Shown here piece by piece: positions 16,901-62,400 of a DNA stretch of 64,000 nucleotides; within the stretch, counting starts at the first letter, position 1, and each line of letters starts with the position of its first letter. The position numbers and the translations under genes were made by a program. The stretch spans positions 15,686,001 through 15,750,000 of the forward strand of contig NW_026262581.1 in assembly GCF_021869535.1 (NCBI RefSeq), read 5' to 3'. The DNA is from Mytilus californianus (taxonomy: Eukaryota). The notes below the pieces were generated by a model. That model worked only from the letters and a program-made list of their open reading frames with translations, was not told the DNA's origin and made no database searches.

Positions 16901-19900
16901 AATATAATCAAAGTGATTGTGAGCACTGAAGGGTTAAGATTGAATTTATTTTGCAGTGGGAACTAAAAATTAAGCATTACATTGTATTAAGCATTGGAAG
17001 GGAATACTATGTATGAATTATAGATATCTTCCCTTGTAGCAAATTGTAGTTTGTTCAACTACAATTATGGACAAAGGAAGATAACTCAAATTTTAAATTT
17101 TATGTTGTTCAGTCTTTAGTTTTCTATGTTGTGTTTTGTATACTGTTGTTTGTCTTTTGGTCATTTTTCGTTTTTTGCCATGGCGTTGCCAGTTTATTTT
17201 TTACTTATGAGTTTGATCATCCCTTTGGTATCTTTCACTTCTCTTTTTTTACAATGACATCATTTATATTTTTAGATACTAGATCATGCACCACTCACAA
17301 TTTATGTAATTTTCTTGACAATATAAAAATAGGCAACTATACAGCCTTCAACAATGAGAAAAACCCATACCACATAGTCGACTATAAATGGCCATGACAT
17401 GAAAAATGTGAAACAATTCAAACGAGAAAACTAACGGTCTAATTTATAACAAAACAATACTAAAAACACATATGGCATACATGAACCATACAACAAGTAT
17501 GGTTCTACACATACATTTATCTTAAATAAATTTCATGAAATATTACTGGATAAGATGTATATAGACTCAAATATATTTTAACTCAAAAGTAGTGATAAAG
17601 TCTGGATAATTGATAACTATCAAGCCAGCCTCATACAGGTTTTGTTTCAAATGCAATCTTTACCCTAAAAATTACAGTTGCACTATGTGTGCATAAGCCA
17701 AATTGCAATCTTAATTGATTTGAACATGTTGTATTAAAGGAAACAATTTCTGAGGTGGAGTACTGTTTTTTGGGGGGTTTCATTTATCCTTTTGGCAATG
17801 AATACTGGAAAGTCTGTTGGAAAATGGCTGCCATTGACTTTAATAATAAATTATGAAGAATAATGTATGTAAACAATAATATATAATCCATAAATCAATA
17901 CAAGTTAAATGTACAGGGTGTAAAAGGGTTATTTTCAAGGTAAAGTTGCAGAAGATTGAACATACATGTATGATTCAAAAGATATCATTATGAAACTTCA
18001 AATTTCAGTCTAGCAATTGCTGTGACTTTGATCTATTGATCCCAAAATCAACACTTGATAGAAATCTTCTTCACCCTGTGATGGATTATCAAACCAAGTT
18101 TGGTTCTAGTTGTAGATATGGTTCAAATATATACATGATATATACATATATAGACTCAAATTTATAGCTTGCTGTTTGGTGTGAGCCAAGGCTCTGTGTT
18201 GAAGGCCGTACTTTGACCTATAATGGTTTACTTTTACAAATTGTGACTTGGATGGAGAGTTGTCTCATTGGCACTCATACCACATCTTCTTATATCTATA
18301 TATGTATATATAAATATTTGATTTGTTGGTTAGGGTTATGTAGGATTAATTTTGGCCTAGGTTGTGGTGAATTGATAGCAATAGTCTGCCATATAGGTGC
18401 TAGATATCTCATTAGCAGTGATCTGTATCTATTTTTTCATATGAGCCATATCCTCAACATAAACCATTAGCAACAGTTTTGTACTTACCTGCACAGAATA
18501 CACCAGGCACCAAACTTCTAATAATCAGTACTCTTATGTTTTTCTCAAACTTCACATTGTTAATGCAGCCTTGAAACTGAGATAAAAATTATGAGGAATA
18601 AATATTTGTCAAATTTGAATTTGAAAATGTTTATGTGACTTACCACTTTAAAATGTAACAGGCTACAAATAGACAGAAAGTAAAGGTCAATAAGTCTGCA
18701 ACCCTCAAGTACAATAAAACTAAAAAGCACATCTACCATTTCTACCATGTTGAAGAATCTTGTAGTAATTTATTTTGGGGGAGCAGCAGCAAAAACTAAA
18801 TTTTAAGCTTTTTATTCTACGTAACTAGGGATCAAACCGACAACCTTCAACATGTTTAACATTAGAGGGGAGCACACTTCCAGGAGACCACCAAAATCGG
18901 TTCTTTTGGACGTATGATCTATACTGCAATGACACTTGTGTGTTTTCTCTCAGTAAAATAATTAAGTGTGTATCCCTCTTTTTATCAAAGTGATAGAAAC
19001 CTATCATTACATAGTCAGCCGTCAGTTATCTACAACCAATTCAAACATAATCTACATCATGATATTATACATGTTATATTAGCTACAGCATATGTACATA
19101 CAATGAGCAAAATAAAGCGTATCCTGGAATAAAAGCTGTACCCTTGATGTATAAATAATTAAGTAAAAATTCAAATTTAAATTGAAACAACATGTAATTT
19201 TGTTTACAAATTTAAATGAAATACAAAAGTGTGACAATATGAACATATCTAGTACATGTATATTTAAAACTTGGTAAAAGCATCCAAAATCATTTTTTTT
19301 AAATCTAGCTTTAGAAATTTAGGAAAAGCTAATTGAATAAATCATGTACTAATGGGAAATTCCGATACTATAAAAATCCCTTCATGCATGTACAATCTTA
19401 CATGTACCTTAATTCAATGTTTTAAGTAAAAATACATTGAACTTTATTTGAACTTTGGTGGATAGTTGTCTCATTAGCAATCATACCTCATCTCCTTATT
19501 TTTATATTGACACCAAGGGACAGAATGTTGGAACAAAAAAATTTCTGTCTGAAATATATATTAAATAAATTGCTTCACCGAGAGCAGCTGGATACGACCG
19601 CAGAGGTCCAACCCTGAACAGTTGGGTCAAAAATGGACACAATATTCTAGCTTGATACAGGTCTGAATTTGGATTGTGATTCAATATTTGACACACAATA
19701 GGTTTCTGACACAGAATAACTGTAGTCAAAGAACTTAGAATTGGTTATATGATTTGAATTTATATTCATTTTTTTGCTTTTGTGCAATACACTATGCTGT
19801 TGTGAATTGACCTTCAAGTGGAGAGAAGTCTTATTGGCAATCATACCAGATCTTCTTATTTTTACATGTTTTATATGGTCTCCAAAAACAAATTTAACAT

Positions 19901-21764
19901 CCTTTCTTTTCTACATCATGTATATTAATTACAAACCTACCTGACTGAGGAAAACTTTTCCTAAAGAATTCTTTGCTTTTGGTCTATTCATTGAGATCAC
20001 AGCAATACCTATGATAAAATAATAATTGGTTTCTAATACAATTTCACCAATGAAAATTTGTTTTTAAGTGAATATCATTAAATTAACAAATGTACAGTAC
20101 ATGTATATATTCTCTCTCATGATATACATTATAAACTTGCCATTTTGTATATATCTTATACTGACAAATGGAACTATTGTGTCAAAAATATTCAAAAGTG
20201 TTTTGACTGTTATAAATTATGTTTGGTAAAGTGTCTTGAACTTAAAATATCGTGTTAGCATAGTTAGCAAAATGGTTAGGATGGACTTGTGTTGTTTGCA
20301 GAAAACTAATTAGAATATATTTAAATACTATATTAACATGATTAAAGGTAGGATTTAACCTTAAAGATGTTATAGTTAATATACAATATTTTTCTGTTAA
20401 TATCAATCAAAAGTTAAGCTTGGTATGTACACATATGTTTAAGTTATAAAAAAAAGCAATATTGATTAATTTTGCATCTCTAACATCCTGACATCATGAA
20501 CATATCATAAGGAAGTTGACAAAATAAACCATTCTTTTTTTCTTTTCTTTTCTTTTTATGTTTTTTGGTTATTATTGAAATTAAACTATTCTTTTAAAAA
20601 TAACATAATTAAGGTGACAAAATTACTAAAAAATTAATTTATTTTTAGAACAATTTTTGAGGTCAATAATGAGATCCTGGCTTCAAACACTGAACTGTTT
20701 TAATAAAAAAGTAAGAAACTTATTTTGTCATAAATGGATTCATTGATAATTCTTTAATAAATATAAGTTACAACATTTTATAATAATATGTAATTGTAAT
20801 TTGTATCTCTTTATTTTTATATTAACAGTTCTGACAGAAAGGTCTATTGGGAAGGTCATGATGCTACTGAACATGTTGTACTGTTTCATTTATTAAATGC
20901 ACGTAAAAAAAGAGCCTCAATGAGTATACCCTTTACTATCAATGCATCACAACTTAAGGGAAACCCTGGAGGTAAATAAATGTTATGTGTTACATGTATT
21001 CAGACTAAATGAGTCTCCTCTTGATGTTTTATGCACATGCTCTTTAATTGTCTGTTGCGACCCTCTCCCTAATACTAAAAGGATACATGTACACGATCTT
21101 TGTGGTCCGTAAAAGTGGTAACCCGAACTCAGGTGCAGTTCATTCATAAAAAGGAATGTTGAAATTTACACTTTGGGTATTTAGCTGAATTTGCTCCAAA
21201 TGACCCTATATATGTATGTCTCTGTATAACCTTCTGGGTCTTGCAACAATCTCTATTAACTATGACATCAAATGTTGTACATTGTGAGGCAAAATTTTTA
21301 CGGGACGTTGTTTGACTTAAACAGAGACATATACACATGTGTATATATGTCTCTGACTTGAAGTGATGAATGACAAATTTGCAAACAATTGGATAAATAC
21401 GTCTATTACCATGATTACCCTCTCCCCTTTTCTTGTAGCAGTGGAGCGTCATATGTAGCCTGCTTCCTATGAAGTTATTATAGGATTAATGTCTGAAATA
21501 ACCCCTTCAGATTTTGTTCAATAACTGTAACACAGAACATAATAAAAAGGGGGGTCATGAACCAAAGCGACGATTAGCTTGCATTTTGTTTAAAACAAAA
21601 TTAAAAATACCTTCATTGTCACCCTCCAAAAATTCAAGACTGCATTCATCAGTATCATTTGATTTAACTAAATACGTGTTTTTTAACATAACCGAGCATC
21701 TTGACACCGAAAGGAATAAATCTTTCCTCAAACTTTGGACTCGACATAAAACGGAAGTTGCCAT
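7172..21764 (-). CDS. AUH: Methylglutaconyl-CoA hydratase, mitochondrial (crotonase fold), 9 coding exons, 303 aa
   Basis: Exons 21611-21764, 19941-20008, 18489-18576, 16478-16657, 14011-14067, 12059-12246, 10659-10709, 8006-8053 and 7172-7249 all have GT-AG boundaries. They total 912 nt in one open frame. Motifs [35 protein letters not shown] and PTKDRIEG match AUH; both catalytic Glu (E153, E173) are present. Confidence 0.97.
8006..8053 (-). CDS. AUH: AUH exon 8 ([16 protein letters not shown])
   Basis: ttacag acceptor, gtaat donor, 48 nt, phase 0/0. Confidence 0.93.
10659..10709 (-). CDS. AUH: AUH exon 7 ([17 protein letters not shown])
   Basis: tttcag acceptor, gtaagt donor, 51 nt. Confidence 0.93.
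11038..11429. mobile_element. MITE, PIF/Harbinger-like (TAA target-site duplication), in AUH intron 6
   Basis: TIR ggccaaataaaaatacatgtgtggttccagttac / gtaactggaaccacacatatatttttatttggcc; both ends are flanked by TAA. Confidence 0.75.
12059..12246 (-). CDS. AUH: AUH exon 6 ([23 protein letters not shown]...ALEITPN)
   Basis: tttcag acceptor, gtaagt donor, 188 nt. Confidence 0.96.
13238..13974 (+). mobile_element. Helentron/pearl-like non-autonomous element with ~170-190-bp tandem cores and a (GACA)n microsatellite
   Basis: Starts taacaag. The motif agtcccct occurs near both ends. Repeated core aacttga.ctgtaacttgtca.gataaa. (GACA)n at ~13850-13918, then the 3' hairpin tcccct...aggggatt and an A-run. 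Confidence 0.65.
14011..14067 (-). CDS. AUH: AUH exon 5 ([18 protein letters not shown])
   Basis: tttcag acceptor, gtagg donor, 57 nt, phase 1/1. Confidence 0.95.
14293..15096 (+). mobile_element. Helentron/pearl-like element with 4 tandem ~150-170-bp cores and a (GCC)n tract
   Basis: The motif atgtctcgc occurs at both ends. Cores tcaaagt..atgaaccatga...tctccatgg.aatgagatgtgc.aatgc at ~14385, 14550, 14685 and 14850. (GCC)n at ~15007-15037. 3' hairpin tctcgc...gcgaga plus an A-run. Confidence 0.65.
16478..16657 (-). CDS. AUH: AUH exon 4 (ADLKERAKM...LACDMRIA)
   Basis: ttttag acceptor, gtaata donor, 180 nt. Confidence 0.96.
18489..18576 (-). CDS. AUH: AUH exon 3 ([29 protein letters not shown])
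   Basis: tctcag acceptor, gtaagt donor, 88 nt. Confidence 0.95.
19941..20008 (-). CDS. AUH: AUH exon 2 ([23 protein letters not shown])
   Basis: tcatag acceptor, gtagg donor, 68 nt. Confidence 0.94.
21611..21764 (-). CDS. AUH: AUH exon 1, with probable mitochondrial presequence
   Basis: [31 protein letters not shown] is Arg/Lys/Ser-rich and acid-poor. It ends GDNE-G|gtatt in phase 1, matching exon 2. Confidence 0.88.
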
Positions 21765-21904
21765 TTTTTCTTTTGAGTTACTCCCCCTATGTTATTGCTG
21801 CCCATCGATTTACTGTTCGATGTCAAGTTAGAGTTAGAGTTTGGTCCGTGTTCGAATTTCTGTTGAAGTTAGAGATAAATCTTTCTAAAATTGTCCGTTT
21901 ATAC

Positions 21905-26488: not shown

Positions 26489-27272
26489 TGTTACAGTACT
26501 TTAATAATTGTAAGAAAAAGCTTTAAGATTTTTCTTTGGCTCCTTTATGATTACAAATTTGCTTGATATCAAACACTTGAAATATTTATGCGATACAGTA
26601 ACATCCTACAGAAATACATCATGTACGAAGCCTTTTCGTTTCACCGCTGCTTCTCTATGAAATAGATTACCAGACCAATTTGGGACTGAAAATAGCTTCA
26701 CATATTACAGAATATAATTCCTGGATTTGTTCTGACTGTTGTTGCTTTGCTTGGTGGTATTTTAATACCCTTTCAATCATTTTTATGTTTCCTAACTAGC
26801 TTACATTGGATTTTTTGGGTCTCATTATGCCAGCTGGTTACAGAATACAGTAGATGCATATCGTAGCTCTAGATCTTGTTTCATGCACACTGACTCCGGA
26901 GGTGAAAAAAATACTTCTAAAAAAATCATACAAATCATATTTTGATATGCCTGCCGAACTTGCACTATTTATTAAAATTATTTTGTGCAGCGTACTTTCT
27001 GAATTTCTATGTAATAGCCAGATACAGATTCTCTGATTTTTTGTGAAAAGATTAACAGAGCTGTTACTTACATATAATGCTCATTTGACATTTCAGATAT
27101 TGCAAAAAATGTATATAAAGTTTGCCTTTATAACAGAACTGACCAGATTAAGTCGCAAACTTTTAAATTTCATCTTTTTTTTAGTATCTTAGTGTTTTAT
27201 ATGTACTTTTAATGTTGTGCTGAATTATTTGCATACTGCATCTTTGTTTTAATTATTAAAGTACACGTGTTT

Positions 27273-27370
27273 ACACACACACACAAACACACCCCTCCTC
27301 CCCCCCCCCCCACCCCCCCCCCCCCCCCCCCCACCCCCCACCCACCCCCACCCCACCCACACACACACAC
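27273..27370. repeat. (CA)n plus poly-C low-complexity tract
   Basis: Seen directly in the sequence. Confidence 0.9.
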
Positions 27371-28259
27371 GATGCAATGATCTGTGCTGTTACAGCTTTT
27401 ATCTATGTGTCTAATTGACGGAATGAAACCAGTAAAATCTATTGGAAAGTAAGTAAAAACCATTTCAATGTGATTGATATAAGCAATCATACCGTATAAT
27501 CAGCTAAAAACGAGAAAAGCTAACGGCATAATTGATAACAATACAATTTACGAAAAACAAATATGAAAAACCGATTCATGGCTTGAGACAGGCATATATT
27601 GAATCTGGCTAGATTAAACATGTTTGTGAGCGCTCAACCTCCCCTAAATTTGGACAGTGATGTAACAACACAGCATAAGAACAAAAAATCAGTTTGCTTT
27701 AAAGTTCCTTTTTTAATTGAGTCTACAAAGATTCAGTGCTCTTCCTTTTGAGCAAACAGGTAGTCAACTAAAGTGCATAGGAAAAAAAGAGAAGGAATTC
27801 ACCAAAAAGGATAATATAAAGTCATAAGTCGAAAAAAAACCCCGACAATATCTTGACAACAAAAAAACAACTACAAAAAACGTAAAGACAGACAACAGTT
27901 TACAAAATACTACAATCGTAACAAGCTAAAGATGGAGCAACACGAACCACAGTAAAACCGGGGGTGTTCTCGGGTGCTCCGGAAGGGTAAGCAGATTTTT
28001 TTTTATTTTATAGCAACTGTTCTAAACCATAAGAAATTTTATATATCCTAGGACGATTGAAAATATAACTGAGTTCACATGCTCATACACTACGACTTAC
28101 ATTTTATAAATCACAAGTTATAAAAGAAATACGCATTTATTTGTTATTTATTTCCAACAAACCTGATGCGAAATGTTGTTGAATAAAAAAAATATTCTTC
28201 TCATTTGTTAAAACCACTAGATAAAAATTGAAGTGTATATTTCATACTGACAAAACTAT

Positions 28260-30941
28260 TTACTCATCAGTATCATCAAGTTCAAGATTATCTTCACTAT
28301 TGTCTTGAATATCATCATCATCAGAAGTGTCATCATCATGATAATCATCATAATCATCACTTTCATCACTATCTAATGTCACATTCTGCCCTAAGATTTT
28401 TAGAACGAATTTAATTTCCCATTTTTCATGCTGTTTATCTTGAATGTCTTGGTCTTGAGGAAAAATGTTGACTTCAGGTAGGAAGAATCTAGGCAAAAAA
28501 TATTTTTTGTTGTAGGCTAAAAGTTTCATAAATATTAACACGGTAAGTTCCATTAGTGATGGCAATTTAGAAATGTCATCTGGTGTATTTGGGTTCCAGT
28601 GAAGTTCTTGTAATACGTGAAATGTGCAGTTTTTCAACATATAGCTACTTATGTCAGTTACATTGCAGATGTCAACAAAGAGCTTTGCAAGCGCGTAACT
28701 ATCGCGTACTTTTTGCGGAAAAGTCTCCATAAGGCAAACTTCTGCTGGCGCCGTAGAGACGCGTAAATTGGTTTGTACTGGTCTTATTCGATCAATAGTA
28801 TCCACTATGAATTCTTTGAGATATTCAGAGGTGAACGATTGCTCGTCGGAAGTTGTGTCAAGTAAAAGCAGACAGCCAGCATCATGGATATTCTGAGTCA
28901 TCATTGGTAACGAATTAGGATCGATTGGCCACCAAGCTGTTTTTCTGACGGCAGGAACCATGTCTATCTTAATCCTTAGTTGTTTATGTTTACAACCAAA
29001 CCATAGAAGACGTACCATAAAGACTGTCGTTTTCATATCTTTTTGCAAGAATGGCATTTCGAAAACGTAACACAGATTACGGATTTCATCATTCTTCCAT
29101 AAACTCGGATCGTGTAAGGCTCGATTCAAATATTTGTGGAGGTACATGAATATAGGCGGTGAAATGAAAAGTCCATTTTCATCAAAAAATTCCAATACGT
29201 CTTGATGGCCTTCAATAGGTTTAAGCTTCAATACATTACTGTTGAATTTTTCTTTGGAACTATTTCTTTCTTTATGACGATTTCTCTCTTTGGGACTATT
29301 TCTTTCTTTAGGACGATTTCTCTCTTTGGGACTATTTCTTTCTTTGATGTCACAAAATTCAGCAATTCTATCTAAACAAAGGACAAAATCAAATTCATCT
29401 GGAGCATTTACTTTTGTTTTTTCTTTTGAACTACCGGACTGAAAAACTGTCATTTCAAATCTTGAGTCGTATTTTGAGACTTGTTTGCATAGTAACTCTA
29501 CAAAAAAGCATATAGTGGAATTGATTTTTTCCTCTTCTTCTCCTTTATTTCTATATTTGTGATCAAGAAGTTCTTCAACAAATTGGTCCATTTTCATTTC
29601 TAATTTTTTTGATGTTTGCAATGACTTAAAATTTTCAAAAAACTGTTGGTTTCTGTCGTAAAGCTCTTCCGTTGTTGAGCATTTAAGTAGAGCTTCTTCT
29701 GAACTTATTCTCAAGTGACTTCTTGCTGTTTCGATAGGAGATTCTCCTAGTTTGTCTCTGATGTCATTTCTTGCTCCATTTTGAATCAACAAATTGACAA
29801 AAGCGCCAGAATCGTGGTAGGCAGCATAATGCAATGCAGACGACCCACTGTTGTCTACTGCGTTTAGAACGGTCGATGCTGTAGTTATATCATTCAGAAA
29901 TGGGAGACAATCAGAATCGTAAAATGCACTTATATACATTAACGGAAAACAGCCCCATTTATCAGATGCGTTAAATTCAATGTCTGTTGTTTTCATTACA
30001 TTTACAATTGATTTGATTCTTTCAAACGTTAAATCTTTGCTATCAACTCTCACTAAATGGGCTGTCGACTGCTCATATATGTTCTTAGCATTAGCGTCGG
30101 CTCCGGTTTCAATGAGCATTTTCAGCAACTTAACAGGTGCTTTGCGCAAGCAGGCTATAGCATAATGAATTGGATAGTTTCCTAGATTGTCTGCTATCGT
30201 TGAGCATCCTCCAGCATCAGACATTTTCCGCAAAACCTTGATGGCATTCACGTTTCGATATCTATCGAAATGGTTTATTATCAGAAGAAAAGGGGTTGTA
30301 CCATTTAAATTTCTTTGTTTCAACAACGTTATTAAATTCTTATGAGCACAGCAAGATACTTTTCCTCTAACAATGTCGTCAAGTAGTGCAAATCTGTCTT
30401 TAAATTCATCGGAGACAGGGCTTGTTTTGTTTATACTTTGTACAAAAGAATGAAGGAAATTTTCACCATCTTTGTTTATCATGTCTACGTCCAACCCAGC
30501 GCACGACTCGAGGATAAACCGTAGGACACATGGTGGGATAGTATTTCTGCTTGCTAAGTGAAGTATGGAATATCCATGCTTAGTTTGTTGATTAATATCA
30601 ATTCCTAAACTTAGTAGGACTTGAATGGTTCTTTGCCAATCGTCTATAGCAACAATGTTGTAAATTAAACTGTGTAAAACATTGTACCCGTTTAAATCTT
30701 GCTTTGTGACATCAACTCTCGGCACCTGCAGGAGCAGTTCTAGCACATATGTATTTGTGTTTATTGCAGCATAATGAAGAGGAGTTTGGTTCCATCTATT
30801 ACCGGTATTAACATCATCCCACTCCTGAGAGGCGAACCAGCACTGAAGTAAATCTGGTCGAGTATCTTTAATAGATTTATGTAGTATAGTTTCTTCACTG
30901 AAACAGCTGTCGTCACGGTTATATATCTCTTCATCTGACAT
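28260..30941 (-). CDS. Ankyrin-repeat cGAS/Mab-21-like nucleotidyltransferase (ANK-cGLR), 893 aa, single coding exon
   Basis: Uninterrupted 2682-nt ORF in repeat-rich DNA. About 10-11 ANK motifs (TPLHYAA, NVLH, SILHLA, NFLH, YPIHYA, SALHYAA) at aa ~15-420. NTase motif G503-S504...E516-F-D518 (QSGSSKEKTKVNAPDEFDFV) and D660 (IKIDMVPAV). Mab-21 C-lobe motifs RVSTAPAE, SYMLKNCTFH and LPRFFLPEVNIF. Acidic tail. Confidence 0.9.
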   Translation of the reverse strand: MSDEEIYNRDDSCFSEETILHKSIKDTRPDLLQCWFASQEWDDVNTGNRWNQTPLHYAAINTNTYVLELLLQVPRVDVTKQDLNGYNVLHSLIYNIVAIDDWQRTIQVLLSLGIDINQQTKHGYSILHLASRNTIPPCVLRFILESCAGLDVDMINKDGENFLHSFVQSINKTSPVSDEFKDRFALLDDIVRGKVSCCAHKNLITLLKQRNLNGTTPFLLIINHFDRYRNVNAIKVLRKMSDAGGCSTIADNLGNYPIHYAIACLRKAPVKLLKMLIETGADANAKNIYEQSTAHLVRVDSKDLTFERIKSIVNVMKTTDIEFNASDKWGCFPLMYISAFYDSDCLPFLNDITTASTVLNAVDNSGSSALHYAAYHDSGAFVNLLIQNGARNDIRDKLGESPIETARSHLRISSEEALLKCSTTEELYDRNQQFFENFKSLQTSKKLEMKMDQFVEELLDHKYRNKGEEEEKINSTICFFVELLCKQVSKYDSRFEMTVFQSGSSKEKTKVNAPDEFDFVLCLDRIAEFCDIKERNSPKERNRPKERNSPKERNRHKERNSSKEKFNSNVLKLKPIEGHQDVLEFFDENGLFISPPIFMYLHKYLNRALHDPSLWKNDEIRNLCYVFEMPFLQKDMKTTVFMVRLLWFGCKHKQLRIKIDMVPAVRKTAWWPIDPNSLPMMTQNIHDAGCLLLLDTTSDEQSFTSEYLKEFIVDTIDRIRPVQTNLRVSTAPAEVCLMETFPQKVRDSYALAKLFVDICNVTDISSYMLKNCTFHVLQELHWNPNTPDDISKLPSLMELTVLIFMKLLAYNKKYFLPRFFLPEVNIFPQDQDIQDKQHEKWEIKFVLKILGQNVTLDSDESDDYDDYHDDDTSDDDDIQDNSEDNLELDDTDE
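29247..29345 (-). repeat. Coding minisatellite, 18-nt unit with 36-nt higher order (KERNSP/KERNRP)
   Basis: Alternating tttctctctttgggacta / tttctttctttaggacga, ~5.5 units, frame preserving. Confidence 0.9.
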
Positions 30942-31770
30942 CGTACAGTTGTATCATCAAGTTATACTCTAATAATTTACATTTATCTGAAGTATACATA
31001 AAGAATTCATTAACAGAGTAATAATGTCATTATATCAACAATATGACAAACGTTAATCTAATGTAGTCCAATTTTATTTATGCAAGGAATTTTTTTGTGG
31101 AATGTTGTTTGAATTTGGTTGTTGATTTCCAGTCATATTTCACTTCAAAGTTAATATTAATATGTAATATGTTTTGTGTTTGGAAGTTTTCCTAGGTTTT
31201 ATATGTTCTAAAAGTGTGATTTTTTATATTAGGTAACTGATGCAAAGAACATTGAAGAATTTCCGCTGTTTATTATTCTATAACAACTCACACTGAACAA
31301 ATGTAAAGGAGGATAAGAAATATTTTTCTATTTTTTCTCTTTATATGCGTAGAAAAGCAAAGTTATTTATCTTTCCCTTTTTTTAGCTAACTTAGCCATA
31401 AAGTCATGTTCACCTGTTCGAACGTCGGTCCATCGTTAGATAATTAACATTTACTTCATCGCCTCTGAAACAACCAATCAAATGTGAACCAAACGTGGCA
31501 GAAATAGTATGCAATGTTCTCTATTTTCTGATTTCGGTACGACTGGAAATTAAATATGATCACAAATCTAAAGAGGCAATCTTTGTTTTGAATTGGCCAA
31601 TTATAAAATATTTTCTCCTCTGAAAATTTAAGGCGACATATTTTGATGACTGGAAAACATCTTGTGATTTATAAGTTTATATTCGGCGTCCGTACAATTT
31701 TCATATTTCCGACTTCTTCTCTGAATTCACTTCACAGGCACTTGTCTCTGAGATTGCGCCCACTTATTTA

Positions 31771-32604
31771 CCTTAATATAACACAAGGTACTTAACTCAC
31801 ATTTTTGAAAAATGAAAATCGGTCGTGAACTTTCGTTATATTTCGATTCCTCGTTTGTGTACCCCACTAAAACTTGTTATCCCGTAATTCTACATTGATT
31901 TATCGACACAATGGTGTATGACACACCTACCTTTGTTGTAGAAATCATTCGCAGCAAGTATATCAACCGTAATTATTTCGTCTTCTCACAGCCCTTTGGA
32001 AATATTAATATCGCAGTAAATCGTTAATTATAATTGTCCCTTTGGTATCTTTCCCCTCTCTTATACATATCTCGCTTTCCGTTTGGTCAAATCTAATTGC
32101 TAAAAATAAATGTTTTTTGGAGTTATCTCAATTTTATATGTAGTCTAGAGAGATTCTGAATGACATTGATTGACCGTGAAAATTTGAGTCTAAAAAAAGA
32201 ACTCGTAACTCATTAGACATACATCAAATCACAGTTATTAGATTTTTTTTTCACAGAATCTTTGACAAATTTACTCTCTGGATGATAAGTTCTATTCAGA
32301 GAAAAACTAACAGGTTTTTGGTAAATACTTTATATAATTAATCATTCACTGCGAGAATAATATTTCTAAAGGGCTGTGAGAAGACGAAATAATTACGGTT
32401 GACATACTTGGAAGGCCTATTACGAATGATATCGATAATAAAAATAGGTGTGTTATACACCATAGTGTAGATAATTTAATGTTGATTTACGGGATAACAA
32501 GTTTCAGTGGGATAGATAACCGCAAAAACCGAAATATAACGGAAGTTTGCGGCTGGGTGACATTCTTCAAAAATGCGAGTTAAGTACCTTGTGTTATATT
32601 AAGG
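31771..32604. mobile_element. Foldback/MITE with ~260-bp inverted arms and TA flanks
   Basis: ccttaatataacacaaggtacttaactc...aaccgtaattatttcgtcttctcacagcccttt is mirrored at 32330-32604. TA on both sides. Confidence 0.75.
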
Positions 32605-35095: not shown

Positions 35096-37715
35096 ACACA
35101 TTACAAGAAAAAACATCCCTTTAGAAGATATTTTCTTATATTTTTTTTAAGACAACCATGTATTTTGGAATTTAGTAGTATCCCAATTCTGTAATGCCTT
35201 ATTTGCTGAGAATTAATCAAAGATTAAGTTCAAATCATGCAATCAATTTGAGGATAGTATAAGAAAGATAATTTTGATAATTGTTTTAGAGCAAAAATAT
35301 ATGAAAAATGGTAGAGATACAACAATATAAACAGTTTTTTATCTGAACTTTCAGTGTCCAACTAGATGAATAAGCTACATTATAATTCAATGTGAAGTTT
35401 GGGGATAGAACAGCATAGTTCTGATAAACATTCTTAGAATGTAGAAATATCATATTATAGTTGTATAGGGAGATAGACAATTGCACCTCGATCTGAAATA
35501 AAAATGTCCATTTTGTCTTTTCTGCCATTTGTGGAAGATCATTCAAGATTCACACGACGATTTGCTTTTGAATGTATATCTTTGATAGTTTTGTTTAATT
35601 TATGCACTACTTCTTTAGACTTGAGGCGGTTTAGATCCTGACATACCGTATAGGTATCTTTCATTATAGCAGACTGTTCTAGATATCGTTTAGTTATTTT
35701 CGTCGTTGGGTTGCTGTCTCATTGACGTTTACCAAAATTCCGTTAAAATGCATATTCAATAAAAATAGCAAACTTCAAAATTAAGTCTAATTGCAATATT
35801 TTAAATTAATAGAGAAATATGTGTTGAGAATTGTTGAAATCATTAGATTTTAATCAATACATATCAATACTGAAATTGCTCTATAATCAAACATACATAC
35901 CCTTTCCTTCTTTTTCCTAGTAAATTGGACGTGTCAAAACGCAATCCATTAATCCACATAATAACACACAGCCAATCCTTTCTCTTACTTAAATTTCTTC
36001 CTTGTACGCAAAGACTTTTTAAAGTTTAATTATAGCAATGGAGGCTACAAAGGGTTTTTATGCATTAACTGTTATGCTATGTAAGGTAATATGTGTAGGT
36101 GGGTGTTTTTTTTTTATCAGCTGTGAATGAAAAATACCAAGTTTAAATCTAAGATAAGGAGGTCGAAGGGGATGTCCCCCCAATATAACATTCACAAAAT
36201 AGGATAAATAGTACATGACTGGAAAACAGTATAATATTATGGTCAAGAAAGGAGTTGCAGGACCACCAAATGGCATCAGAATTCGACGCAACCAGCCAAG
36301 ATACTAATGCTGTAAATGTAAGTTTCGGGTATGGTTTTGGACAAATGAATCAGTGTGAGGAGACTTTATAAAAATGTTTCATAACCATGATAATGAAAAT
36401 TTAGACAGATATCATTTTAAAAAAATCTAATGAGTTTAGAATAGGTTTGAATTACGTGAACTCAAAGAGGCTATGGGATAACATTTCAGGAAATAAGGTG
36501 CTAACAGTTTTAGGCTTGTTACCATACAATATCTAAATAGATACACCGTGGATACAAAATTTCTACACCACATAAAGAGAAATAAAAAAAAAAGTCAGCT
36601 AAAACAAACAAAAAACCAAACAAAAACCAAGCAAACGTTTGATACCAGTTTATGATCCTTCACAAAAGGTGTAATAAATTATGCTGACTTCTCTTATTTA
36701 ACGCTCGTCATCTTCACTATCATGTGTTCAATAATATTGATCTCTCCTTGCCTTTTCTGTCATATGGACAGAACGAGATAGATATGTATATAAAATATTC
36801 TCTGACCGAACCGAGTCATATGATTATTTCAGTTAACTTAAAAATAGACAAGATTTGTGGAGCAGAAATTAAGAAGTCTGTATCGGAATATGTATAATCG
36901 TTAAATGCACCTACGCAATAGAAGAATGTACACTAAGAGTGTCGAATGATAAAAAAAAAAAGATTTTATGTTATAATTATTCACAGTTATTTCTTTTTTA
37001 TTCGAATATCAATGTCATGAATTTTTGTATGACGCCATGATTTTTATCAGTGGCGGATTCACTGTTTTTTTCTTCAAAAAGGGGAATGGAAGGGATTTTA
37101 GAAATGTGCGCAAAATAGTTTCCATTTGAATTTGATTATTCCCATAAGAACAAATTCTAGATCTAACAAGTTAAGAAAGATACATCTAATAAGGCAATCT
37201 AGATTTTCAAAGTTTGTTTCCACATTGTGCATGGAACAAATGCATGTATATAACATGTATAATGATATGTTGGTTGCACGAATTTAAATTAGTTTGCGAG
37301 GAAGACCTATATCGTGCTATATAGTAATCAAATGACAATTTTGTCCAATTGTTGTGCTTGTTAAATTAGTCCAATGAAAGAGTATTTCTTGAGGCTAATA
37401 TTATCCATCAAAACTCATCTAGACCTACAACTAATTCAAACCTACAAACAAGAACTGCTAAAAACTTACCACAGGCTGTGTCTTTGGATTCCAGCCAAAG
37501 AGGGCAGGCAAATAGGCGGCACCAACAAACGTTTCAGCATCCTGTACAAGTCTCTGCAGCCGATACATTAGGAAAACCATCCAAACCCCAAAATGAGAAC
37601 CTCCCAGCTAGCAATTCTTCCCTATCAGTTAACTCAGGATCAATCAACCATCAAGCTCCTGAAACAATCCATAATGTACATGCTGACATTAATCGCGATC
37701 TCCACCCGAGTCATT

Positions 37716-38095: not shown

Positions 38096-40445
38096 GGAAT
38101 GTGTCACGACTGCAGAAATTCATGCTATACCAACAGAGTATACTCAAAGCTCCCCGGAGTCTGATCAACAAACAACTTTTCGAACAGCTACCATAGACAA
38201 TAAACAAACTCCAAATAGAACAGGGGACAGCAAATCGAACTCTCCCATTCGCGACAACTGCCTCCAGGAAAAACCTCCAGATCAAAAGAACAAAACAGAA
38301 ATACTGTAACTACTTGTAGAACCGAGAACACCAGATTAACAACATGTAATATGGAAGGGATAAAATCCAATACCTCCTTCTTCACTCGCTTCTCGACAAT
38401 TCTCATAGCATATATCTTCAAGAACACTTCCTCTGGGAATGTCAGTCAAACATCCTACATAACCTATTGCATGAATGGGAAAACCACACCAGATGTCAGG
38501 ACTCCAACAAACCACTAGATGGATTCAAACTTCCTAAAGGGCAGGCAGGTGTATCTATTCTCTGGCCCAAATTGTGGAACAATCAAATACAAAAACTTCC
38601 AGATGGAAATGATAGAATAGTCTCTATATTGATAACCTCTAACTGGAATATCTGTTTAATTAACGGTTATATGCCAACTATGGAAACTGACTCACAGTAT
38701 GAATACGGAGACTGTCTTGATATAATTCATGCAATTATAGAGAAATATCAGTCAACGCATCAAATAATTGTATCTGGAGATCTAAACGGAATTCTTTCTA
38801 ACTGTAGGAATAACAAACATGATCGGCTACTGCAACATTTTGCTCAAGAAATGAATTTATCAACAGTTGGAAACTATGGTGAACAGATCACTTTCTTCCA
38901 CCATTCAGGGCAATCTTCCTGTCAAATTGACTATATATTGACCTCAAAAAGTGATATCTATAGTAATCATGAAATCTGGGAAAATACACCTTCGAACGTC
39001 ACAGCGCATGTACCTGTCTCGATGCTTACAAATATTGCTATTCCACTGCTTGAAAAACATTTCAATCAAAATAAAAAAAACTGTCTATAAACTGAAATGA
39101 AATAAGATAGATAAACAACTGTACCGTGAAACTATTTCTGAAAACTAAATGCCATAAAGGAAGACAACTCAACTTCAGATAACATCAAAATTCTTACAGA
39201 CATCCTACACAAAGCGTCGCATGCGGCAGTCCCGTCAAACATGACCAGGCTAAAAGGCCCGAAATGGAAAGCCTCTCCAAAAGTCAGGAAACATCTTAAA
39301 GCCTGTAAACAACTATACTCTAAATGGAAAGCTCTGGGCAAACCAGAAAATCATCAAAGCAAACAAGATCTTAAAATTAAAAAAAAAGAAACTCCGTAGT
39401 CAAACAGAAACAAGAATATGCTACTGACAGGTGAAAACTATACCAGCAAATTATAGACAATCCTTCAACCGAACTATTCTACAAACTCACTTTAGAAATA
39501 AAACCAAATACGTATGGAAATATCTGGCATAGAGATCGATAATGAATTTGACTTCTCATCCCGAAATCAAAGCCGCGCTTTCGCTAACTACTATGAAGAT
39601 CTCAGTATCCTTAAAGAGAGCTCATATGACAACTCTTACCTGGAACTCTGCTAAGTTAGACAGAAAATATTTGAGGAAACATTCAGCCAGAAAATGCCAT
39701 CAATCAACCCATACATAGAAAAGGAAGTAAAACAAGCAATTGAGAATTTCAACACAGGAAAATCATTAGATGAACACGGAATCTGTGCTGAACACCTAAA
39801 ATATGCATAACCTACCGTTGTCCCATCTCTGACTAAAATTTTAAATAAAATCTTGCAGGAAAGAAAAGTTCAAGTCAATTTTAAATCATGAATCTTAACG
39901 CCTGTCTTAAAGAAATAAAAAATCCATCTCTAGTTTATAGTTACCGTGGCATTAAGGTGACCCCAGTACTGTTAAAATTACATGAATTTTGCATTCTTGG
40001 CAAACTCTTCATTAACTCTGGTACCGACTTACCATTCGGATTCACTAAAGGTTTATGGCCACGCTTCGCAAGTCTCATAATCTTAGAATGTAAATGTGAG
40101 ATAAGTAAATCATTATCCTTATATCTTGCTACCGTCGATGTTCAATCAGCCTTTGATGTCGTTCAGCATACCATTCTTCTTGACAAACTATTAGATCGTG
40201 GAACTCACCAAGATATCTAGTTACTAATCAAAGATTTTTACAGTGGACTCACCCCCAAAGTTGAATGGCAGGGAGAAATCAGTGAAAGCTTTAATATCCT
40301 CCAGGGAGTTAGAAAAGGTGGTATTCTATCAACCCACCTATACAAAATATTTGTAGAGGATCTCCTCAAGGAAACTCATTAGGATTTATATTAGGTACAA
40401 TAAACGGTGGAGCACCAACCTGTGTTGATGATGTAGCATTACTAA

Positions 40446-42419: not shown

Positions 42420-45379
42420 TAAGCTCAACCCAGACAAACTACAGATGATGCTTAACATCCTACAAAGATATGCAAACCAACATCAGTATAATATCCACCC
42501 ATCTAAATCTAAAATTATCCACTACAAATCTTCAAAAAACTTTCAACCATATTCCTGGAACTTGTCGTGAAATGTTATCGCTGCGTCAGAGGAAACTGTA
42601 CCAACAAATATGCTCTAATGAACTTAGGTCTGCATGGAACTAACGGGTTAAACCCAAATATCTCTGATACAATATACAAAAGATACGTATTACTAAGATT
42701 CTTATACGGTTTGGAAATCCTCATTCTAACTAAAGCTCAAATGGAACTGCTGGAAAAATTCCACAAAGAAACTCTCAGATGCATACAATCATTCTCTAAA
42801 AGAACAGTTATTCCTGCTATTTATCTACTACTGTGTGTTCTACCCATTGAAGGAGAAATCCACAGAAAGAAACTGACTCTTTTACACGCCATTGTGTCAT
42901 GCGACAACTCTAAACTAAAGGAATTCTTAAGAGACAAATATCAGTAAATAGCAATAATCCAAAAAGCTTCTTCCATCAATCAATTTTATTACTAGAACAG
43001 TACAATTCGCCAAACATTCTTGACCTAAATAGAAAACCGCATTCAAAGTTGGTCTGGAAAAAACCCTAAGATCAGCAATCCACAAATATTGGACTTCTGA
43101 ATTACAAGAAACGGCAGATACAAAGTCATCACTAAAAGTCCTAAACATAACCATTTTGGAGATAGGAAATAACCATCCATTCTGGGACTATGCATCACAA
43201 AATTTATTAGATGTCAGGAAAAGCATGTTTAAGCACGTATACTCACTGGATTATACTTAGTACAGGCTGACAAGCATAAATTTAGTCAATACAAAATAAA
43301 TGCAACATGTCCGCTGTGCCACAGGGAGGATGAAGATATAATGCACGTTTTAACCTTCTGTCCGTCATTTAGGGAAATTCGTATGCAGTATTTCCTTCCA
43401 CTCAAAGATCTCGTATCATAGGATGCTAGAAATGGGAAGAACTCTTCAAAAACAATCAAGACATTACGGTATTGATGCTTGCTTTTTCAGTGTTCTGCGA
43501 TCTGCAAAACCTCAGCAAACCTCAAACGATGAATATTGAGTCACTGACGAGTGACGTCTGTTATAAAATACACATCCGTCGAATACAACTTCTGAAAAAT
43601 TTAGAAATAAAGTGAAACTGAAGTGAATTGTGTGAATTCTAGGAGAGGATATTCATGGACAATGAATTTCTAGTATTTTATGTACTTAATTGCTCTCCAC
43701 ATATTGTAGAATACATATGGCAGATAAGATGGTTTTAGATTTTAAGATTTGAAACTTGTACATTATCTTTGCTCTTTTGAACATATATGCATTCTCAAAT
43801 GTTTTATCCTTTGTATTTGCACAAATTGTACAGAGCACGTCTACTGGAGCACGTTCTATTTTTGAATTTATGTCTTAAACTCCTTTTAAAATTAAGAATT
43901 TTACCCTCTTACTTATTCGTGTAAATATTTTTCTTTTACCCAATAAGGAGTGTTCCTAAGATATGAAGTATATATATAAGAAAGAAAGACACATTTACAG
44001 ACAATTTTTCAATAAATTGGTACTGTTTTTTAATCTTGATTCTTAATAAAATTGTGAACAAATCAATTAATGAATCAAAAGAAAAATGAAGATTATAACA
44101 CATGTTATAAACATTTAGCAATGACATTTAGGTATTAGTTTTCTTAGAAATAATAAATATTTACGATTTTAAGTATAGAAAGACTATAAACATACCAACT
44201 ACATATTAAATGGAACGGAATGATAAAAGTATTATGACAACTCTTCCTTAAAATCAATTCCTTTATTGTTCGTGGATGAATGCATCTTTCATAACCTGCC
44301 AAATCCGGAATTTGATCATATGGAAACCATCAAATGCTAATGGAAGCGGTTTTCCAATCATTGCTCAGTAATACACGGAAATACAGTACTATCACAGATA
44401 TACTCAAGGTTCGCTATTATGGGAGCAAGAAACAATATGAAATATGAGAAATTGTCCTTTAGCAATAACCATCATCTGGAAGTCAATATATGAACAATCT
44501 TGGAGATTCCGGTCCACATTTTATAATCTACTGTTGTTGACAACGTTCTTAATCACAACATTAAAGGATTAAACTCCCTTTTAGAGGAATTTATTGGTGT
44601 ATAAACTCGACCAATTCCCTTACAAACAAATAAAAGTCCGAAGGACTTTTATGATATGTTTGTGAGTGACTTGGACCAGTTTATACACCAAAACATTCCT
44701 TTAAAAATGAGTTTAATCCTTATAATTCTTTAAAATTGGAGATAAGGAATTCATTTTTCGACACTCGTAACCTCTATAACATTTAAATTGTATATTTGTG
44801 TCATTGAATTGGCCTGGCGCATGAATGTATTTGTTGGTTAACGCAAAAATATGTACTCCATAAAATTTGATATCTGATAAAATATAAACTACAAAAACGC
44901 GAAGTGCAAATAAATTTTTCAACGTCGAGCCGGATTGTGATATTATCGCCGCCATCTTGTTTACATTGATTGCATAAAGAAGTTCGGTCAACGTCGTCTA
45001 TCGAAAAATAAACAACGTCAAGAACAACTACCGGAAGTCCTCTCGACCAATCATATCAACGTATTCCCTAATATGCAAATCATATAAGAATTATTCTACA
45101 ATAACTTCTACGTACAAACAATGCCTCGGTTCAAGCGACTTTACATTGATGAGACTTTTTCGGGAAAAGACGTGTTACTATGATCCATTGACAATTTAAC
45201 GTATAAACAGAAAAATGGTCGAAGGTTTGAAAATGAGAAATGAAATATCAAACAGCAACACCTAATTTTTAGCCTGTTGTAATCTACCAAATTGTACATG
45301 TAAACTCATGTGTACTATCTTATCTCATTTAAACCGACTTATCGCCTTAGGTCTCGAATGAAAGAGGAAGTCTGAGAAA

Positions 45380-45383
45380 ATGC
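45380..45383 (+). CDS. LU-FReD exon 1 coding part (ATG C)
   Basis: gagaaaATGC|gtaagt is conserved identically in the paralog at 62401. Phase 1 fits exon 2. Confidence 0.7.
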
Positions 45384-48300
45384 GTAAGTCAGTATGCCTT
45401 TTCCTTCACTATATCATACATAATTATGTTTAAAGTATGATTATACCGCACAGCAATGTATATGTAAAGCTTTATATTATCAATTGTATGTAGAAGAAAA
45501 TTAGATTATATTGTTTTGTCGTTTTATTTAGGATTGTGATTTAGATAAATGTGAACGTATAGCTATATTGAACTGATTCAATAGTTTAATAAAAGTTTTA
45601 TATGCCCTTATGTTGTGCTGTTACACCACTGTCCTAGACTATTGGGAGAGAGTTGAGCGCATTTTAGCTTACTATATACGGTATGTGTTTCCCTCATTGT
45701 TGAAAGCCGTACGGTGACCTGCACACATTCGTATCCTTCTGGTATGTGGCGGATTGTTGTCTCTTTGGCAATAATATCACTTCTCCATAATTTCATAACT
45801 AGATTTTAAAAAATTGGAGAAACCTTGCATTATATGGATTTAATATACAAACAGCTTAACTGTTTGTTTAACTTTATCGATTTAACTATGATCTAGAGTA
45901 ACAAGGATCTTAGATATCAGATGAATATTAAAATTGTATAATGTACAATTACAGCTTATTTCATGTATAACAATACGCATATGAAGCTTGCCTCCATAAA
46001 TGCTGTTGACATTTTAGTCAGTAAAATATCATTTTTACCTTGAATATCACTTTTGGACCAGTACTAAAGGATAAATGCCGGTATAAAAATGCACCATACA
46101 ACAAACATTCCCTACGCGTTTTGTTCAGTTGGCCATATTAATCTTTGAAAAATTCTTACTGTCAGAAAGTTCATTGCTGATAGAAAATGACGAGAAAATC
46201 TTCAGTGGTCATTAACGACAATTTGAGATATACTCAGTAATTTTTCTCGCAATAAAAACGGAAAAAATGAAGAATTTGACCGGAATCGTCACTTCAGATC
46301 TCGGAACCAGAAGTAGGCACTGAATATATGTTACCAAAAGTGAAACCCTGCATTCCTGGTCAAATATCAGCTGCGCGTCAATTGTCAATAGACTGATCAT
46401 AGATACCAGGCTTTACATTTTGTACGCCAGAGGTGCGTTTCGTCTATAAGACTCATTAGTGACGCTCGAATAAAAAAAAGTTAAAAAGTTACGAAGTTGA
46501 AGAGCATTGAGGACCATCATTCCGAAAGTTTTTGCCGATTACTGCTTACTGCTTATGTAATTCGATCATTCCTAGTGTTAAGTCAAGTAAGCCGGGTTCA
46601 CAGACTACTTAAAGTGATAAATGGAAGCAGCCATCTTTGTAAACTGGTTTTGCGCATACATGATCTGAAATCTATATTTTCTCGCATTTTATTTTGTTAC
46701 CGAGTTACGGACATTTTCATTTAGGGTTGATTCCAATCTGAATTGACTAGGATTGTCAGTTTTCCTACCTAAGGTCGGTGGTTCTCTCCACCAATAAAAA
46801 GTGACCACCACGAAATATCACAATAGTGCTAAAAGTAGCGTTAAACACTAATCAATCAATCAATCAATCCAACAGCTTTGATTTTAGCGCTAATGATGAG
46901 TAAACGAAACGTGTGACTGTTGTTCCAAATCATAAGTCTTTATAATCTTTTAAGTCAGAAGCCAGCCGTTGTTGTTGATTGATGTCTGCCATACTAATTT
47001 TTCCTTTAATTTTTATTATTATCCATTTTGTCATGTCGGGGCAATTTATAGTTCACTAAACGATATGGTTTTGCTCTCATAACCTTTTTAATCTTGGCTT
47101 GCTGAAGAGAGCGGTATGTGATTCATTTTAGATCCCACTTTCTCAAAAACGGTTACCGATCTGATAAATAATATTTTCCCTTAATTTAGAGTACGATTTT
47201 TTTTTAAGTTGGTGCGTCCTTTGTTCATTAAAGCTTATAATGAATAGGCGATTGCATGTCTTATCGTTTTAATTGAATCGGCTACATTGCCATGTAATCT
47301 TAATTTTCCGACATGAAAATATAAACTGTTTTGCGGTAGGAATACAATGCATTAAAGTTTGTTAAGACATATGTCTTAGGAGGTATGATGGTCCGTTCGC
47401 TGAAGTGCGATGGTCTAAATGACCTTAGTTACAGTTTCAAACTAAATGAGAGATTGTCCTTTTTAATTTTACTGCATGTGAACATAATTCTACGTGTATA
47501 GTTTATCTTTACTTACTTCCTCTCGTGAGTTCCACTTTTACTATAATATTATAATATAGAGAGTATGTTTGCGGATCAATGTGTCTTTATTTAGAGAATA
47601 CCACGTTTCATCGTTCTTAAAAAAACAAACCTGTAGATTTCGAAAATAAAAGGATCCGCTACAGAAAGCTAAATTTCCCACTCTCTACTAATCACTCCCC
47701 TTTTCTGTATTATTCAAGTTTATAAGCCTTTTATTTACTTGTTCTCATGTTGAATGTGCATTTAATACTTGCGACTGGACTTTGCACTTCGAATATATTT
47801 ATTGTTTATGTTGTTTTGTTTTGTATTTGCTATTCAAACAAATACCGAGTGTTTCCATTGACTGAATTAGTACTGGTTTTAATGAAAAATAACCTTTGCA
47901 TGCAGTGGTGAATTTCTGAACGAGTGTACGCACATTGGCTCATTTTTGTCCGATTTATCATCACAGTTTTAAATAAAATGGGTAATACTCTCGATGATTT
48001 ACTTCAAAATCCGGAAAAAAAACCTGTTTTTAACAAACAAATTGACTTCTACATCGACATGTGAACATAGACGACTTTGAAAATATAGTTTATGTAGTTC
48101 ATCGCACTTCAACGTTACCACCAACGCACTTCGGCGTAGCTATCAACAAGATAGTGTCTCAATGCCACCATCGCACTTTAGCGTGAACAAAAACGCACTT
48201 CAGTGTCAAACCATCGCACTTCAGCGTAATCATCGCCGTTCGGAGTACCATCGCGGTTCAGAGTCGTACACATATACTAGAGAACTGATGGAACAGTAAA

Positions 48301-61345: not shown

Positions 61346-62400
61346 TCTTTGTCAACAGTTTGTTTTACTGAAATTTCTTCCTTGTAAGCCTATATAAAGT
61401 TTAGATATAGCAGAAAGAGACTACAAAAGACTTTGATGCAATGTAAGTTAATATTTTCACAAAACGTGTAGTTGGATGTTTTTACCAGTAAATAACAGCG
61501 GAAAGAGCGTAAAGTGTAGTGGTTTATTTTACAACTTGTGTTATATGATAAAAAAATACCAAATTTAAAACTAAGAGATGGGAATTGAGGAGGATGTATC
61601 CCAACAGTTTAACAGAAAATAGGTTAAAAAGCACATGACGAAGGAAAACAGTATAACATTGTGGCCTAGAATTCTGATAAGTTACTCGATTTTTCTCATG
61701 TAGATGCAGATCTTAACGGAATTCAGATAAGTGTGTAACATTTACTTGATAGTAAACGTTCTGAACAGAATTCTGCATTCATCTTTTTTTGTAAAAATAT
61801 ATGCGGATCTTGCGAGTTCTGTATCTATAAAAAAAATATATGGCAATCTTGATACAGTTCTGACAAGGCTGCATCTTTTATTGCAAAAAACTGTTACGAT
61901 TAAAATGACTTATGAGTTTGAATGTCCCGTTGGTATCTTTTGTCTCTCTTTTAAATACTTTACTGAAATATGAAAAAGTGTCGCATAGCATTAACCAAAT
62001 AATTCGGAAGTCTCAATATCATTCAATAAATGACCAATTTCATCTTGGAGATTCCGGTACCACATTTATAAATCTACTGTTGTTCTTGATCACATGGTTC
62101 TACAATAACTTCTACGTATATACACTGATTCTGTTAAAGCACTGTTGTGCGACTTTATATTGATGAGACTTATACACAGAAAAAGACGTGTTACTGTGTT
62201 ACTTTCATCCATTGACAATTTGACGTATAAGGAGGAAAATGATCGGGGATTTGAAAATGAAAACTAAATTAATAATAACCAACACATATTGTATTGCCTG
62301 TAATCTATCAAATTGTACATGTATACTTATGTGTACTATCTTATCTCATTTAAGCCAACTTATCGCTTGAGGTCTTGAATGAAATAGGAAGTTTGAGAAA

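Follow-up and report, generated by a model that had tools for sequence, protein, structure and literature searches.

The stretch of the Mytilus californianus genome analysed here comprises 64,000 nucleotides (contig NW_026262581.1, positions 15,686,001 to 15,750,000, forward strand) and is called the window below; all coordinates are those of the window. On its minus strand lies a gene for a cGAS-like receptor (cGLR) fused to ankyrin repeats (ANK), referred to as the ANK-cGLR gene. It is a real, transcribed mussel gene in which about 11 ankyrin repeats are joined to a cGAS-like enzyme with an intact active site. The open reading frame (ORF) is present exactly as given in a preliminary description made from the sequence alone: it is uninterrupted from 28260 to 30941 and consists of an ATG start and 893 codons followed by a stop. 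Since no other ORF exceeds 210 residues across the 64 kb, in a window of 33% (30-37%) GC, the frame cannot be attributed to chance; the runners-up reach 207 and 151 residues. The protein is present in NCBI, where its Mytilus orthologues are labelled 'uncharacterized protein'. Neither further copies of the family nor a partner gene were found in the window, in which the gene is single-copy. The features of the transcript are as follows.

35901..36000, minus strand: tentative non-coding 5′ exon, start undefined, with a GTATGT donor at 35900 (putative, from a contig-end match)
30986..30988, minus strand: 3′ splice acceptor with AG at 30988-30987, opening the coding exon at ~30986, 45 nucleotides before the ATG (contigs, read depth, sequence)
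28260..30941, minus strand: complete ANK-cGLR coding sequence (ORF list; RNA contigs and stranded reads tiling the region; intronless orthologues of 881 residues)
28136..28152, minus strand: two AATAAA polyadenylation signals, transcript end at ~28120 (sequence; coverage stops at ~28121)

Transcription is documented by the stranded RNA-seq run X21 (same species, raw reads), which covers 28120-31063 with first mates on the plus strand only, the usual mark of a minus-strand transcript; read depth is zero from 31064 to ~31980. The strand-consistent reads are confined to this interval. Contigs from three further runs, including RNA-seq library X13, tile the same interval. All three sets of contigs leave the genome at 30987/30988, where the minus strand reads as a polypyrimidine tract followed by cag, so that the entire coding region lies in one exon. 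Upstream, a 22-nucleotide contig-end string adjacent to the junction matches 35899-35920 with 3 mismatches out of 22 (0 expected by chance), within a block that is also conserved in M. galloprovincialis and M. edulis, and may mark a non-coding 5′ exon near 35901-36000. The farther part of the contig end is only ~77% identical there, and strings of 30 and 21 nucleotides from the loose contig end gave no match allowing up to 3 mismatches.

In M. galloprovincialis and M. edulis the orthologues are intronless coding sequences of 881 residues, and their loci are collinear with this one, with a fibrinogen-domain gene on the upstream side and one for enoyl-CoA hydratase on the downstream side. Across three Mytilus species the orthologues are 1:1 and occupy one and the same chromosomal position; oysters have close relatives of them. 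Compared with the M. galloprovincialis and M. edulis orthologues (synonymous divergence dS ~0.28-0.30), the ratio of non-synonymous to synonymous substitution rates (dN/dS) is 0.16-0.19 for the whole coding sequence, 0.12-0.18 for the ankyrin array and 0.15 for the nucleotidyltransferase (NTase) domain. All indels relative to the Mytilus orthologues are in frame and restricted to two disordered segments. Both halves of ANK-cGLR are under purifying selection. A pseudogene or chance ORF was considered as an explanation of the frame and rejected on its length relative to the other ORFs of the window, its transcription and its dN/dS.

Architecture and active site

The encoded protein consists of an ankyrin solenoid, a short linker, a cGAS-type catalytic domain and an acidic tail, with the following boundaries and active-site positions.

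29667..30899, minus strand: ankyrin-repeat solenoid, residues ~15-425, ~11 repeats (Pfam, AlphaFold, Foldseek, dN/dS)
29598..29666, minus strand: short linker with one helix, residues 426-448 (secondary structure; the structural alignment with cGAS starts at residue 449-454)
28383..29597, minus strand: cGAS/Mab-21-fold NTase domain, residues ~449-853 (family profile, VIA-align, Foldseek)
29430..29435, minus strand: G503-S504, activation loop (kept without exception in the 84 relatives; in the GS columns of cGAS and of the oyster receptor Cv-cGLR1)
29388..29396, minus strand: E516-F517-D518, containing the first two catalytic acids (E in 81 of 84 relatives, replaced by D in two; D in 84 of 84; aligned to EFD)
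29249..29346, minus strand: basic KERN(S/R)P insert, an in-frame tandem repeat of 18/36 nucleotides, residues ~532-565 (Tandem Repeats Finder, TRF; disordered)
28962..28964, minus strand: D660, third catalytic acid (D in 82 of 84 relatives; aligned to the D column of cGAS and Cv-cGLR1)
28263..28376, minus strand: disordered acidic C-terminal tail, residues 856-893, of which 22 of 38 are D or E (composition; pLDDT ~30)

The assignment of the C-terminal half to the cGAS/Mab-21 fold depends on family information. With the single sequence, the Pfam models Mab-21 and Mab-21_C score 14.4 and 15.5 bits, below the cut-off of 24.1, and phmmer reaches cGAS only at E 3e-4; the whole orthologue group of mussel and oyster proteins (P0001-P0006) lies below the Pfam Mab-21 threshold. 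An exhaustive representative search found 251 relatives, of which 84 catalytic domains were used to build a family profile. Against the PDB, this profile retrieves over the whole domain Cv-cGLR1 of Crassostrea virginica (PDB 8gjw, E 1.1e-26), a second cGLR1 structure (8gjy, 1.7e-26) and cGAS (~7e-25), followed by a Tribolium (beetle) cGLR (8e-15) and then by MAB21L1 and MB21D2. The predicted structure agrees with these matches. Because ankyrin matches swamped the Foldseek search with the full-length model, in which cGAS first appears at rank 48, the NTase domain was folded alone (pLDDT 86.5, pTM 0.86). With this domain model, Foldseek gives E 3.8e-13 and places cGAS and cGLR structures far above MiD51. 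VIA-align superposes 328 residues of the model on residues 146-503 of mouse cGAS (Z 28.4, root-mean-square deviation 3.2 Å) and likewise 328 residues on Cv-cGLR1 (Z 26.9). The Mab-21/cGAS-fold NTase of the preliminary description, for which it had proposed HMMER and Foldseek searches, is thus recovered by the profile and by the predicted fold, with the reservation that single-sequence Pfam stays below threshold; its concern that the C-terminal half might not adopt an NTase fold is not borne out by the model.

The catalytic machinery aligns column for column with that of cGAS, as had been proposed for G503-S504, E516, D518 and D660. The E516-F517-D518 motif stands at the start of a strand in the AlphaFold model (residues 516-523), and D660, on strand 654-666, falls in register with the D of the motifs 'ISVDI' of mouse cGAS and 'IDVDLVPAIR' of Cv-cGLR1; these strand positions, together with the alignment to solved cGAS and cGLR chains, support a clustering of the three acids. 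In the C-terminal lobe, R727 and S729 occupy the cGAS 'RLSFS' columns, K753 a nucleotide-contacting column of cGAS, and S766-Y767 with K770 the 'SYHVK' columns. Catalytic residues are kept in 81-84 of the 84 relatives, and the whole catalytic and nucleotide-contacting set in 69-84. The alignment thus identifies an intact, conserved active site of the cGAS type. As judged from the sequence and the predicted fold, the protein bears every trait of a cGLR that was looked for: the bilobal cGAS/Mab-21 fold, significant sequence homology to the Mab-21/cGLR family, the GS loop with the acidic triad, and the nucleotide-contacting residues of the C-terminal lobe. The zinc (Zn) thumb of cGAS proper is absent, neither the protein nor the family profile having a His/Cys insert or a Cys cluster after RVSTAPAE; alignment with mouse cGAS leaves the same observation of the preliminary description unchanged.

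The N-terminal half is an ankyrin solenoid by every approach used. Five Pfam Ank models match it with E values from 1e-15 to 4e-26, the lowest for Ank_2, and the full-length AlphaFold model (pLDDT 81.7, pTM 0.84) contains ~11 helix pairs over residues 19-421, mostly with pLDDT >85. Foldseek aligns 412-420 columns to 12-repeat fragments of ankyrin-1 and AnkB (TMt 0.75-0.80). The tandem 33-residue helix-turn-helix repeats that define ankyrin-repeat proteins are therefore present, and the earlier estimate of 10-11 repeats can be refined to ~11. The pTM of the full-length model suggests a defined arrangement of the two domains relative to one another. The 'helical linker' formerly placed between them survives in part: a true linker extends only over residues ~426-448, while the remainder is mostly the N-terminal and spine helix of the cGAS-like domain.

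The array carries no trace of recent expansion, as no tandem DNA repeat giving near-identical internal repeats was found by TRF in the ankyrin-coding region. Array and enzyme diverge in parallel: identities of ankyrin and NTase parts are 93/93% to the orthologue cluster of M. galloprovincialis and M. edulis, 67/73-78% to the M. galloprovincialis relative P0002, and 51/54-55% to an oyster (Saccostrea) protein. The traits of rapidly diversifying repeat sensors, such as the NLR-like ANK, TPR and WD arrays of fungi and bacteria, are not seen in tandem repeats, domain-level dN/dS or identity, a comparison made at the level of whole domains.

Two segments depart from this conserved body. The KERN(S/R)P loop sits between two strands of the core sheet, with pLDDT <50 at residues 537-567, and is missing in oyster as well as in other relatives. 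One 36-nucleotide KERN unit is skipped in an RNA contig of run X13, which comes from another sample, and the M. galloprovincialis and M. edulis orthologues have one 18-nucleotide unit fewer. The minisatellite makes coding length polymorphic in a surface loop of an enzyme of the immune type. The acidic tail has the highest dN/dS of any segment and a 6-residue indel. Being disordered, lineage-specific and variable in length, both segments are likely to be tolerated or modulatory and not to form part of the core.

Family and known systems

Among the nearest relatives of the catalytic domain that have an N-terminal extension, 77 of 80 carry ankyrin repeats. They include proteins of M. galloprovincialis, M. 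edulis, M. trossulus and M. coruscus, of other bivalves (Crassostrea virginica, Saccostrea, Argopecten, Ruditapes, Mercenaria and Mactra) and, outside the bivalves, of the coral Orbicella faveolata. The survey of the architecture across molluscs that had been proposed at the outset extends to a wide range of bivalves and a coral. In each of the five other genomes examined (M. galloprovincialis, M. edulis, Saccostrea, Argopecten and Orbicella), one exon contains the whole coding region, and intronless coding regions of 850-970 codons are unusual among animal genes. Their occurrence in Mytilus, Saccostrea, Argopecten and Orbicella suggests either an old single-exon fusion or spread by retroposition. 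The clade is old, being present in bivalves and in at least one coral; its ankyrin array is almost always retained and its coding region is intronless.

The combination of ankyrin repeats with a cGLR is not new, since it is listed by Li et al. (2023). In that census, ANK-cGLR fusions appear in Fig. 1C, Fig. S2A and Table S2; ANK-cGLR and TPR-cGLR classes are shown, 87% of cGLRs being stand-alone, and ANK-cGLRs are pointed out in the coral Stylophora pistillata. Two members of the present clade are found in Table S2, namely VDI69555.1 of M. galloprovincialis and XP_020601746.1 of Orbicella faveolata; XP_022327162, VDI25036 and CAG2197629, accessions from the orthologue group of the gene itself, are not among the entries listed in the accessible tables, an absence that carries no weight. 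The design is the same as in those ANK-cGLRs, with an N-terminal ankyrin array, a Mab-21/cGLR catalytic domain and a complete active site. The same source gives 119-218 cGLR and 8-9 STING genes for Mytilus species, with 218 cGLR and 9 STING genes in M. galloprovincialis (Li et al. 2023), in agreement with the earlier statement that bivalve cGLR repertoires are expanded and that some members are fused to repeat domains. The architecture had also been called poorly characterised. This holds insofar as no functional study was found, but the design itself is already catalogued in the census.

The closest characterised system by profile match is Cv-cGLR1, a synthase of 2′3′-cUA that is activated by double-stranded DNA (dsDNA). 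The mussel protein shares with it the GS, ExD, D, R-x-S and SY-x-K motifs and the absence of a Zn thumb; it differs from it in sequence (~16-17% identity) and in isoelectric point (pI), which is 5.6-6.8 for the mussel domain versus >8.5 for nucleic-acid-sensing cGLRs. With vertebrate cGAS it shares the fold of the whole catalytic domain, the catalytic triad and the nucleotide-binding residues at 17-19% identity; it lacks the Zn-thumb insert and the basic N-terminal tail, is acidic overall, and has in addition the 11-repeat ankyrin array, the basic repeat loop and the acidic tail. Since neither a Zn thumb nor a basic surface was found, the ANK-cGLR gene is not a cGAS orthologue. A more distant analogy may be drawn with the OAS/RNase L pathway. 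The ankyrin domain of RNase L binds the 2′-5′-oligoadenylates (2-5A) made by OAS enzymes, and in both cases a cGAS-fold nucleotidyltransferase and an ankyrin domain would belong to one signalling logic. In the OAS/RNase L pathway they reside in two separate proteins and the ankyrin domain receives the signal, whereas in the mussel they form one protein; OAS is not among the matches of the family profile against the PDB at E up to 0.01.

Control of the enzyme

To our knowledge, most animal cGLRs have no known ligand, and ankyrin-fused members are obvious candidates for the sensing of something other than nucleic acid. The charge of the catalytic domain is informative in this respect. Its pI is 6.8, or 5.6 without the lineage-specific basic insert; among the 84 relatives the median is 5.9 and 64 lie below 7. 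The basic nucleic-acid-binding surface of cGAS proper (pI >8.5) is thus not found, whole-domain pI being taken as a proxy for surface charge. According to Li et al. (2023), the known cGLRs that sense dsDNA or double-stranded RNA all have pI >8.5, and there are acidic cGLRs with activity in the absence of added nucleic acid, a cationic ligand being proposed for their groove. The preliminary description had proposed that the ankyrin array replaces nucleic-acid sensing by the sensing of proteins or pathogen effectors. An input other than nucleic acid is supported circumstantially by the difference in pI, whereas the roles of the array as sensor and as guard of an effector target are putative. Direct effector sensing is mildly disfavoured, because an array that evolves as slowly as the enzyme and shows no recent repeat expansion argues against the direct recognition of rapidly changing effectors. 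Slow evolution of the array is compatible with a partner or microbial ligand that is itself conserved, with a guarded host protein, with autoinhibition or other regulation, and with scaffolding.

In animals, cGLRs make cyclic dinucleotides that act on STING. We consider it probable, by a modest preponderance, that ANK-cGLR is a cytosolic cGLR producing a nucleotide second messenger under the control of a conserved partner or ligand held by the ankyrin array and not of nucleic acid. From nucleoside triphosphates the NTase domain would form a small nucleotide messenger, most probably a cyclic dinucleotide, to be read by one of the mussel STING proteins. The acidic enzyme domain and the missing Zn thumb suggest that control would be exerted by something other than nucleic acid. 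The N-terminal solenoid may hold the controlling partner or ligand, whose binding would either free the GS activation loop from a constraint or place one on it, as DNA does for cGAS. Taken together with these two properties, the near-obligate presence of the array makes a non-nucleic-acid input through the solenoid the most economical model.

Several points weigh against this reading as a whole. Nine of the 84 relatives have a pI >8.5, the Mytilus-specific KERN insert is itself strongly basic (pI 11), and an acidic overall pI is compatible with a local basic patch. RNA depth over the gene is low. No functional or biochemical study of any ANK-cGLR was found in the openly accessible literature, and in the screen of 140 enzymes by Li et al. 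(2023) most cGLRs gave no product in vitro, 15 active ones being listed; as far as the text of that paper goes, it contains no biochemical characterisation of an ANK-cGLR.

A different division of labour, which we regard as unlikely though deserving of attention, is that ligand sensing lies in the NTase domain, whose acidic groove might take up a cationic molecule, while the array localises, scaffolds or oligomerises the protein, for instance close to STING, the cytoskeleton or membranes. Scaffolding is a classical role of ankyrin arrays, and the best structural matches of this one are the membrane-binding domains of ankyrin-1 and AnkB; the nucleic-acid-independent activity of acidic cGLRs and the cationic groove ligand proposed for them (Li et al. 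2023) point in the same direction. Retention of the array in 77 of 80 relatives and the prediction of a single body with pTM 0.84 would suggest a coupling tighter than tethering, neither point being decisive.

In a guard or decoy arrangement, the reading of the preliminary description, the array would hold or mimic a host protein attacked by effectors, and disturbance of the complex would switch on messenger synthesis. Conservation of the array at the rate of the enzyme is what is expected if it binds a conserved host protein, although the same slow evolution suits any conserved partner equally. The acidic enzyme domain without a Zn thumb is in line with such an arrangement, as is the fact that the repeats found attached to cGLRs are of the ANK and TPR types (Li et al. 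2023). Yet the locus contains no partner gene, and no guard-type cGLR was found described in the openly accessible literature, so that this arrangement appears improbable.

That the array binds a nucleotide signal, as RNase L does with 2-5A, and makes the protein a relay or amplifier in a network of several cGLRs, seems highly improbable. The idea would draw on the RNase L analogy and on the very large mussel repertoires (218 cGLR and 9 STING genes in M. galloprovincialis; Li et al. 2023); the top matches of the array, whether by sequence or by structure, do not include RNase L, and residues for 2-5A binding could not be mapped. That the gene encodes a non-enzymatic protein of the Mab-21 fold, as MiD51 is, or represents a copy in decay is already disfavoured and retains very little probability, for the sub-threshold single-sequence Pfam scores and the presence of MiD51 among the Foldseek matches are outweighed by catalytic residues kept in 81-84 of 84 relatives together with conserved nucleotide-contacting ones, by an NTase dN/dS of ~0.15, by an intact and transcribed frame, and by cGAS and cGLR structures ranking far above MiD51.

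For the question of what ankyrin-fused cGLRs sense, the mussel ANK-cGLR is well suited: it is transcribed and constrained, with a conserved single-exon coding region, an acidic catalytic domain and a clear domain boundary near residue 449. If the array is the sensor, second-messenger immunity would extend in animals to protein-ligand or guard-type sensing; if it is not, the gene adds a further annotated entry to the greatly expanded cGLRs of bivalves. A bolder proposal, on which we are doubtful, is that ANK-cGLRs form an ancient, obligately fused and intronless clade of cnidarians and bivalves in which the solenoid is the receptor, and would be the first cGLRs known to respond to a protein or another non-nucleic-acid ligand, possibly a guarded host factor; the conserved, single-copy mussel gene would then represent the clade in a tractable form.

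Surroundings of the gene

The segments 27384-27567, 27936-28119 and 31984-32167, which flank the ANK-cGLR gene, are covered very deeply, at up to thousands of reads, on either strand in each of the four runs, and many of their reads continue into unlike sequence; they are most likely high-copy interspersed repeats. A tract of ~70 nucleotides rich in poly-C and CCCA lies at 27290-27368, ~750 nucleotides downstream of the 3′ end of the transcript (~28120). Reads appear cut at 27200-27376, and the repeats in that interval were skipped in read mapping.

On the downstream side, blocks at 18477-21858 are 80-90% identical to the enoyl-CoA hydratase (ECH_1/ECH_2) region that follows the M. edulis orthologue, from which synteny is seen to be conserved on this side of the gene. 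On the upstream side, the DNA at 45093-49557 resembles the fibrinogen-domain gene found upstream of the M. galloprovincialis and M. edulis orthologues, and a second, weaker copy of parts of that gene lies at ~61955-63908. The plus-strand ORF of 207 residues at 38467-39090 resembles, below the score threshold, the endonuclease domain PF14529 of endonuclease-reverse transcriptases (E 2e-5) and is probably a fragment of a long interspersed nuclear element (LINE). Nothing corresponding to the stretch around it is present at the loci of M. galloprovincialis and M. edulis, and this accounts for the wider gap to the upstream gene in M. californianus.

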